The translations under genes and the position numbers were made by a program. From the NCBI GenBank assembly GCA_025786725.1, contig JAHLTZ010000010.1:558001-622000 (forward strand): 64,000 bases of DNA, in the 5' to 3' direction. The notes under the pieces are model-generated. The model searched no databases, was not told where the DNA came from, and saw only the letters and a program-made list of their open reading frames with translations. Positions within the stretch are counted from its first letter, which is position 1, and each line of letters opens with the position of its first letter. The stretch comes from Syncephalis fuscata S228. Lineage: Eukaryota; Fungi; Zoopagomycota. Positions 41,037-43,171 of the stretch are shown piece after piece.

Positions 41037-43171
41037 TTATGCTGTATTTACAAATAAAGATATTATATGTTATATAATTAATGTATAAGCCATCGATATA
41101 CAATACTACTTACAACCTATTAGTATTAAGTTGTTGGTACACATAATGTATAACATGTAGTTAGTGAGTAATTAATTAATATATAATACAACTTACATTC
41201 CTCTAATGTTGATTTGTTGATAGATACAGTACATGATATATGATTAGTGAATATCCAGTTAATATACAATACAACTTACTATCTATTATATTAAGTTATT
41301 GATACACACAGTACATATTATATAATTAATGTATAATCAGCTAATACACAATACTACATACCGCCTATTAATATTAAATAATTGGCACAGTCATTAAATA
41401 TTATAGTTAATATATAGTCAGCTAATACACAATACTACTTACAAACTAATGATATTAAATAATTGGTGCAATCGATAAATAGCATGTGATTAGTGAGTAA
41501 TCAATTAATACACAATATCACTTACAGCCTATTAATATTAAATAATTGATACAATAAATAAATAGTATAGTTAATGTATAGTCAATTAATATACAATACC
41601 ACTTACACCCTATGGATATTAAATAATTGGTATAATCAATAAATAGTATAGTTAATGTATATCCAGTTAATACACAATACAACTTACCAGCTATTAGTAT
41701 TAAATAGTTAATAACATTAGTAAATAGCATAGTTAATGTATAGTCAGCTAATATACAATATAACTTACAATCTATTCATATTAAATAATCAGTGCAATCA
41801 ATAAATAGCATAGTTAATTTATAGTCAGCTAATATACGATACAACTTACGACCTATTAATATTAAAGAATTAATACAGCCAGTAAATAACATAGTTAATG
41901 TATAGTCAGTTAATGTACAATATCACTTACCTACTATTAATATTAAATAATTGGCACAATTAGTAAATAGCATAGTTAATAGATAGAAAATTAATATACA
42001 ATACAACTTACTGCCTATTAATAGTAAGTTATTGATACACACAATACACGATGTATAATTAGCCAGTAGTCGGTTGATATATAATGCTACTTACATCCTA
42101 TTAATATCAAATTAATACACACAGTATATGGATATAATCAGTGAGTAATTAGTTAGTATAAAATGCCACTTACTTTCTATTATATTAAGTTATCGATGCA
42201 CGTAATTCATGATATATAATTAGTTAATACTCAATTAATATGCAATATAGCTTACTAACTATAGCATTAAGTTGTTGATATACATAATACATGGTATATA
42301 ATTAATTTACAAGTCAGCAACATACAATACAACTTACGGCCTATTAACATTAAGTTATTGATAGATATAGTGTATAATATATAATTAGCCAATGCTCAAA
42401 CAATATACAATATGACTTACATGCTATTAATATTGAGTTATTGATACACGTATCACATGGTATAAATTAGCACATAATCAGTTAATATACAATACAATTT
42501 ACCTCCTATGTCATTAGGTTGTTGATACACACAATACATGGAATATGATTAATTTATAAGCCACCAGTATACAATATTACTTACTGCCTATTAGTATTAA
42601 GTCATTAATCCACATAGTACATCATATGCAATCAGTAAGTAATCAATTGATATACAATACAACTTACATCCCGCTAATATTAATTAGTTGATGGATGTAG
42701 TACATGGTATATAATTAGTGTATGTCATATTGATATACAACGCAACCTACCAGCTATAAATATTTATTTGTTGAAGCACACAGTACATAGTATATAATTA
42801 GTGCGTAGTTAGTTAATATATAATACAACTTACGATCTATTAATAATAAATAGTTGATACAATTAGTAAATAGCATGTGATTAGTGAGTAATTAATTAAT
42901 ATACAATACAACTTACCTTCTATTAATAATAAATGATTGGTACGATCAACAAATAGCATGTGATTAATGCAGTCAATTAGTACACAACGCAACTTACTGG
43001 CTATTATAATCATTATTTAGAAATACTGTTAGTAAGCATAATAATATGATATATCTATTGTTATTGCAGCATATCAGCACGACGAACTAAGGCTGGATTG
43101 GCATCCACCATGACTGTAGCGGCCACAAGCGCAACGACAATGGTGCAAACGACGGCAATGGAAAGCTTCAT
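41037..43171 (-). CDS. Micro-exon gene encoding a secreted six-cysteine peptide precursor (about 59 aa): a signal/pro exon, 24 micro-exons and a terminal exon
   Basis: Exon 1 (43171 to about 43075) encodes MKLSIAVVCTIVVALVAATVMVDANPALVRRA. Micro-exons flanked by TAG/GTA, in order: CCA AAG ATC CTG CGGGAT GCA GAG CAT GCC TTA AAA GAT GCA TAG GTC ATT CTG GGT GCT TTT GCG ATA AGGAAT GTT. The terminal exon starts CATAA at 41041. Phase-1 reading gives (A)KDPAGCRACLKRCIGHSGCFCDKECS*. Confidence 0.88.
41042..43000 (-). repeat. Tandem array of about 24 diverged 79-83 bp units, each one intron plus one micro-exon
   Basis: The + strand anchor (ac)ttac-NNN-ctat recurs with exon starts at 41114, 41197, 41280, 41362, 41443, 41526, 41607, 41688, 41769, 41850, 41931, 42012, 42095, 42174, 42256, 42338, 42421, 42503, 42585, 42668, 42751, 42834, 42917 and 42998. 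Confidence 0.95.

Follow-up and report, generated by a model that had tools for sequence, protein, structure and literature searches.

Tens of consecutive codon-sized exons, alternatively spliced, are found in the NACHT-ANK (nank) NLR genes of Tuber, according to PMC4986451 and PMC13449251. A long-read annotation of the fungus Coprinopsis holds 27 exons of 3 nt genome-wide (PMC12230235). The micro-exon genes (MEGs) of schistosomes have 10-20 exons per gene, mostly of 15 nt (range 3 or 6 to 81 nt), separated by introns of 0.1-5 kb (PMC4350168, PMC10526429). In the SSSGP genes of the Hessian fly, promoter, UTRs, signal peptide and intron are conserved while the mature region is hypervariable, and homogenisation is concerted (PMC2955719). 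Here we describe a locus that shares traits with the Tuber, schistosome and Hessian-fly systems, located in a 64,000-nt stretch (the window) of contig JAHLTZ010000010.1 (assembly GCA_025786725.1) of Syncephalis fuscata (Zoopagales). Members of the genus Syncephalis live as obligate parasites on other fungi (PMC6784888, PMC13188720). S. fuscata does not attack humans, animals or crop plants.

As in the Tuber nank genes, fungal genes with tens of codon-sized exons appear to be used for diversification, the window gene having 24 micro-exons and its relatives 13-49. In Tuber, however, the array forms one part of a big intracellular receptor of an ascomycete, whereas in Syncephalis it encodes the whole mature part of a small, predicted secreted peptide; the Syncephalis family (Zoopagomycota) also lacks NACHT and ANK and has intronless paralogues. 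With schistosome MEGs it has in common a parasite family with a signal peptide, most of the coding sequence in very small symmetrical exons, a mature part evolving faster than the signal part and a species-specific expansion near transposons. It differs from them in that its exons are almost all of 3 nt, 13-49 per gene, and its introns, of 60-87 nt, themselves form a homogenised tandem repeat; the two families share no sequence relationship, MEGs appearing restricted to flatworms while all named homologues of the Syncephalis family are from Syncephalis. MEG exons are thus mostly longer, mostly 15 nt (PMC10526429), as an earlier note on this DNA had stated. The SSSGP genes share the features listed above but have no micro-exon array. 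The family works like a MEG and is built like a Tuber array, and is a member of neither. According to the same note, no fungal gene made almost wholly of 3-nt exons is known to have been described: codon-sized arrays are known in Tuber NLR genes, but for the secreted-peptide version the statement stands, since our literature search found no description of the Syncephalis family, nor of a secreted peptide whose mature part comes wholly from 3-nt exons in a homogenised repeat. Single Syncephalis genes carry 22 to about 47 exons of 3 nt, against 27 in the whole Coprinopsis genome.

The window array lies on the minus strand at 41114..43000 and consists of 24 micro-exons, 22 of 3 nt and two of 6 nt (42673-42668 and 41202-41197), each preceded by TAG and separated by mutually homologous introns of 76-80 nt. 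Micro-exons 1 to 12 start at 43000, 42919, 42836, 42753, 42673 (6 nt), 42587, 42505, 42423, 42340, 42258, 42176 and 42097, and micro-exons 13 to 24 at 42014, 41933, 41852, 41771, 41690, 41609, 41528, 41445, 41364, 41282, 41202 (6 nt) and 41116. The donor is GTAAGT in 20 cases and GTAGGT, GTAAAT, GTAAGC or GTATGT in one case each. This recount reproduces the layout given in the earlier note. Upstream on the same strand, the 97-nt coding part of exon 1 (43075..43171) ends in phase 1 and encodes a predicted signal peptide, a short pro-region and an RR site. Downstream, a last intron of 72 nt with a CAG acceptor (41042..41113, minus strand) leads to the last exon (40783..41041, minus strand), which supplies 2 coding nt, the stop at 41039-41037 and a 3' UTR common to the family; an AATAAA lies inside 40808-40799, and homology of this exon to the retrocopy-like genes of locus L125 stops at 40783. 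The probable 5' UTR occupies 43172..43280 (minus strand), homology to the retrocopy-like gene P0145 beginning at 43278, and a TATA-like box at 43308..43316 (minus strand) is conserved in the paralogues L124, L128, L130 and L131. Overall, introns of the window gene measure 72-80 nt and the tandem-repeat period is 81-83 (TRF). The internal coding sequence, 78 nt in all, lies entirely in exons of 3 or 6 nt. The public annotation places no gene over the array, and no second comparable micro-exon chain was found elsewhere in the 64-kb window. A 21-bp tandem repeat lies upstream of the promoter, at 43461..43543; a 145-aa ORF at 43187-43624, which overlaps the promoter and has no Pfam match, was taken as spurious.

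Joining the micro-exons leaves phase 1 as the sole open frame, phases 0 and 2 meeting stops at codons 15 and 12, respectively. The phase-1 peptide has Cys at codons 7, 10, 14, 20, 22 and 26, and its stop is codon 28, in the last exon. An open frame with six or more Cys arose in 126 of 100,000 shuffles of the exon order (0.13%), in 11 of 100,000 base shuffles (about 0.01%) and in 2 of 100,000 draws from the intron composition. The frame, the six Cys and their improbability by chance all agree with what had been noted earlier. The description of the window gene as having one codon per exon does not hold: codons in phase 1 straddle the exon junctions, so that its exons are codon-sized rather than one codon each. 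The micro-exons have a GC content of 0.46, versus 0.24 in the introns. Between units, identity is 23-29% in exon columns versus a mean of 68% in intron columns; 20 of the 22 triplets are distinct, and the micro-exon columns are less alike than all but the most variable intron column, while the splice-site dinucleotides are invariant.

Members of the family were searched for with a profile of exon 1 alone. It matched 74 proteins of 33-191 aa, and every species-named one belongs to Syncephalis; the hydrophobic N-terminus and the RR site of exon 1, both judged by inspection, are conserved in these matches. No Pfam match was obtained among the family proteins scanned, and PDB-sequence, Rfam and Foldseek searches gave no significant match. 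Following these matches revealed six more arrays in two species, each of 13-49 micro-exons; L128, L130 and L131 belong to S. fuscata, L002, L127 and L129 to S. plumigaleata. Exon 1 of these other arrays is 94 nt long and ends in phase 1 just past the RR codons. All seven arrays are open in the phase of the gene, the first stop falling at the array end or in the last exon. In the window gene, L130 and L131, the first three Cys fall at codons 7, 10 and 14 and a second trio is C-terminal; the spacing is 2-3-5-1-3 in the window gene and 2-3-n-3-3 in the two paralogues. Their micro-exons and central loops, 24 and 5 in the window, 35 and 13 in L130, 28 and 7 in L131, differ by whole units. Several family paralogues have no Cys. 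Exons between Cys codons are 40-53% identical, against 75% for introns at the same positions and 85-93% for the signal exon; for the variable exons, this faster divergence was measured on 15 nt in each pair (P 0.003-0.07). No RNA-derived product of the window gene was found among the family homologues retrieved. The best reading of the sequences is that of a family restricted to the genus Syncephalis, mostly unannotated, which would encode hypervariable secreted peptides that are probably effectors.

In S. plumigaleata, a third exon of 2 or 5 nt brings the array into phase 0, so that each exon there is literally one codon; none of the 86 phase-0 codon exons of L127 and L129 is a stop. Exon-1 proteins of the array genes of the two species are only about 32% identical, and the array architecture and the position of the first intron are shared. 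Two S. plumigaleata GenBank models, P0128 and P0129 (KAI8052871.1 and KAI8052886.1), span 4-kb arrays and take 38 and 40 micro-exons in order; the exons that they skip are mostly those with weak donors. These multi-exon models may have been obtained ab initio. Many other public models are wrong: in at least 10 the array is bypassed in favour of the 3' UTR, and in 14 the reading runs on into intron 1. The expectation that gene predictors would miss such genes is true of the window array and of most of the family, but not of the arrays followed by P0128 and P0129. The array of L002 adjoins the NDK gene and, relative to the LARP1-like neighbour, lies on the same side and strand as the window gene, of which it is probably the positional counterpart; it encodes a different, four-Cys peptide. 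No array was found in Thamnocephalis in a 14-kb contig around NDK. Beside the L002 array, at L002:5339-6040, lies a further member that shares promoter and signal exon with the family but whose 216-aa product comes from an ordinary 42-nt coding tandem repeat. Within the S. fuscata arrays, insertions at L128:11250-11565 and L131:10755-11245 share a 68-nt end with an A-rich tail, and each is located in an array intron at a similar AT-rich site; the L131 insertion is flanked by an apparent target duplication and lies near duplicated units. These A-tailed insertions suggest active retroelements.

The array introns have an unusual internal organization. In the window, a branch-like motif is found about 36 nt from the donor and about 42-43 nt from the acceptor; the median branch-to-acceptor distance in ordinary candidate introns of the same genomes, obtained by a crude rule, is about 20 nt. 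No AG is present in the 38 nt preceding the acceptors, where 26 were expected in 23 window introns (observed/expected 0/43 in L130 and 0/36 in L131). The distant branch point and the AG-free zone suggest that the acceptor is chosen as the first AG. Array introns are 0.71 and about 0.65 identical within the two species and 0.50 between them, and the nearest neighbour of an intron is often at another position of another gene. Homogenisation thus proceeds species-wise, positional identity being kept at the array ends. L130 and L131 have one GC donor per array and rare GT variants, which mark probable candidates for exon skipping. Near-identical intron blocks within and between L127 and L129 of S. 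plumigaleata suggest recent conversion or block duplication. As a compact test case, the family could show how the spliceosome copes with many 3-nt exons in a row, the distant branch point and the AG-free zone being the predicted signature.

Four S. fuscata members are intronless, one in L124, two in L125 and one in L132, and resemble the window gene in both UTRs, in the signal exon and in the context of the stop. They serve as natural cDNA-like controls. Each micro-exon was compared with them on its own and ungapped. The L124 protein P0122 (KAI9591999.1) matches micro-exons 1-14 of the window at 30 of 45 nt, and only in the predicted register; shuffling gave a mean of 12.6 and a maximum of 29, and none of 200,000 shuffles reached the observed value. 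P0171, from L125, agrees with the L130 array at 57 of 90 nt over its final 30 exons (null mean 28.4, maximum 49). The ungapped, 5'-anchored match of P0171 to the window exons is weak (best 19/45), owing to indels. These colinear intronless genes are evidence, independent of the arrays, for a real family peptide encoded by the micro-exons in phase 1. The earlier reading of an unannotated secreted six-Cys peptide built from micro-exons in phase 1 is thus strongly supported, both by the intronless paralogues and by the further arrays. The L125 copies are retrocopy-like, starting inside the 5' UTR and closing with a short A run some 17 nt past AATAAA, while L124 retains the promoter and the downstream flank, as expected for in-place intron loss. 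Retroposition of spliced mRNA is the likely source of the intronless copies; the shortness of the L125 A runs and the retention of promoter and flank by L124 keep it short of proof. A tandem duplication of about 1.2 kb (92%) at L125:4951-7413 contains two divergent intronless members, one of six Cys and one of eight, together with a truncated copy of the signal exon of the family.

As to the product, an AlphaFold model of the mature part of P0171 shows two helices (pLDDT 89.5), and a model of P0122 shows three. The top Foldseek matches of the P0171 model, 2nb2, 6o3q and 9q1l, have TM values of 0.57-0.79, all with E > 5. From these intronless paralogue models, we infer for the array peptides a helical hairpin held by three disulfides. 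The predicted net charge is only about +2. Alpha-hairpinins (PMC7191063), such as nigellin-1.1 and the vicilin-buried peptide VBP-8, also have two antiparallel helices and CxxxC motifs, comparable to the helix-loop-helix of the P0171 model. They carry a four-Cys signature (two CxxxC) versus six Cys here, show no sequence similarity, and come from another kingdom and another precursor; at most, the fold may be shared.

In the mechanism that we propose, a conserved first exon (signal, pro-region and RR) and a conserved last exon with its 3' UTR would frame the tandem array. The introns would be removed one after another by intron definition, the first AG past the branch point serving as acceptor, so that exon definition would not be needed. 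A prepro-peptide of about 60 aa would result, to be cut after RR into a disulfide-bonded helix-loop-helix peptide of 27-28 aa; the RR is presumably cleaved by a Kex2-type protease. Since each unit adds exactly one codon, unequal crossing-over or gene conversion can alter single residues without a frameshift: exchange between look-alike introns would add, drop or swap residues one at a time, exon skipping may vary the peptide likewise at the RNA level, and spliced mRNAs reverse-transcribed back into the genome would leave intronless copies. The intron-exon repeat thereby illustrates a route to peptide evolvability, one residue per step. That the family as a whole has this architecture, in which conserved end exons enclose units of about 81 nt, each made of an intron and a 3-nt exon, and which is restricted to Syncephalis, is, judging from the sequences, highly probable.

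The array is a tandem repeat according to TRF, and in metagenomes many sequences that fit the pattern are simple satellites whose triplets do not vary, as would be expected if it were a non-coding minisatellite in which splice-like words occur by chance. A plain minisatellite does not, however, keep invariant splice sites around variable triplets twice as rich in GC. The match of P0122 refutes such an origin, and the second colinear gene, the exclusion of AG before the acceptors and the open frames of seven arrays also contradict it; we regard it as exceedingly improbable. A different account would reverse the order of events, the intronless genes being ancestral and the arrays arising from an introner-like element inserted every three bases. 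The array introns are all mutually homologous, which is also expected of introner copies, and L124 keeps its promoter and flanks. Yet this would require dozens of insertions at an exact 3-nt spacing in many genes, no copy of the array unit was found outside the array in the 64-kb window, and the architecture and first-intron position are common to two species despite the low identity of their exon-1 proteins. The signal exon of the intronless L124 is, besides, 93% identical to those of S. fuscata array genes. Insertion of introners is thus very unlikely. Because arrays are common to both species and the intronless genes are closest to the S. fuscata arrays, the arrays are most likely ancestral to the intronless genes.

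Two further questions concern the state of the window copy and the role of the family. The first donor of the window copy, at 43074, reads AT, whereas all six relatives have GT at the homologous site; the 203 array donors comprise 201 GT, 2 GC and no AT. Intron 1 (43001..43074, minus strand) is 74 nt long, as in L130 and L131, has its branch point near 43029 and aligns without gap to intron 1 of these paralogues, with three extra exon-1 bases before it (97 versus 94 nt). The earlier note had proposed phase-1 donors in exon 1. Near its end two such GTs do exist, at 43083 and 43080 only, but they match the family consensus poorly, and splicing there would cost the peptide the whole RR site or one half of it. 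With intron 1 retained, the frame ends after 36 codons. On this evidence, the window copy is probably a pseudogene of recent origin or a null allele, and in this haplotype it would be silent or spliced only poorly. The rest of it is intact: promoter, open frame and AG-free zones are preserved, as are all 48 splice sites of the micro-exons and the acceptor of the last intron, although the flanks have diverged by about 20% from those of the duplicate L130; constraint therefore lasted until very recently, and the 98 unchanged invariant bases place any loss of it at less than about 3% divergence. This integrity and the presence of the two GTs are also what a fully functional copy would display; the AT would then be an artefact of the assembly or the haplotype, or splicing would use one of the weak GTs upstream, and the 24-exon peptide would be made. 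Such a copy appears rather unlikely, as the donor site differs from the paralogues by two substitutions plus the three extra bases, unlike a single miscall, and the alternative GTs fit badly. Regarding function, the architecture would be the same if the peptides were mating or self-recognition pheromones, or spore or hyphal surface proteins. A prepro-peptide with a dibasic site, a low net charge and many divergent paralogues, several devoid of Cys, would suit such roles, and in Tuber codon-sized exons serve non-self recognition proteins (PMC4986451). Against them, a conserved signal exon and conserved non-coding parts next to a faster-changing mature part is the pattern of parasite secreted families (gall-midge SSSGPs, PMC2955719; schistosome MEGs, PMC4350168), and Syncephalis is an obligate mycoparasite (PMC6784888). 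A signal or surface role is less likely than not. The behaviour of the family gives an even prospect that the peptides are hypervariable effectors or antagonists acting at the host-fungus interface, in which case a hidden candidate effector repertoire of an obligate fungal parasite is uncovered here.

Metagenomes were scanned with a generic splice-site motif, and the arrays listed are a lower bound. About 30 exons of 3 nt directly follow NACHT-WHD-ankyrin ORFs of the Tuber nank type at L020:5349-8172 and L118:5340-7816, the latter also containing a PNP_UDP domain. Upstream of protein-kinase ORFs, L051:90-1629 and L091:80-1283 contain 16-17 exons of 3 nt. At least 13 further loci (L010, L018, L023, L028, L031, L034, L055, L057, L063, L078, L107, L114 and L117) present diverse 3-nt exons, up to about 38. 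L051, L095 and L114, with a GC content of 16-20%, may derive from anaerobic gut fungi. Most matches in termite-gut metagenomes were rejected as short satellites with invariant triplets. The scan suggests that unannotated arrays of a similar kind are widespread in fungal metagenomes. We tentatively propose that dozens of such codon-tape genes diversify peptides by single residues, through repeat exchange in the DNA and skipping of 3-nt exons in the RNA, which would yield combinatorial libraries of secreted effector peptides, with successful variants fixed as retrocopies, and that the architecture may have evolved more than once among fungi, in NLR sensors, in kinase genes and in secreted peptides, forming a general and largely unannotated gene class.

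The window gene lies in a segment of about 7 kb (38110..45440) duplicated with the L130 locus, which carries the 35-exon paralogue, at about 73-85% identity. Copies of a dispersed repeat are found near both of its ends (38354-38665 and 45221-45440), and a 254-nt repeat with 95% identity occurs at 27567-27816 and 38110-38363, beside other copies of a dispersed repeat family. The NDK gene, at 45921-46367, is 93% identical to that of Syncephalis pseudoplumigaleata and 85% to that of Thamnocephalis. It is inverted relative to the LARP1-like neighbour when compared with S. plumigaleata (L002) and Thamnocephalis (L003), and the NDK-HIG1 interval measures about 8 kb in the window versus about 0.4 kb in Thamnocephalis. 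The S. plumigaleata NDK (L002:10001-10446) is one base short of the usual length, which hints at indel errors in the assembly. Short ORFs with signal-peptide-like starts lie at 32661-32882 and 34620-35006 of the window, the second being Ser/Thr-rich. Genes for CAP-domain secreted proteins are located at 15641-16255 and 19989-22241, one of them with four CAP domains, and two CAP genes are also present near the L002 array.
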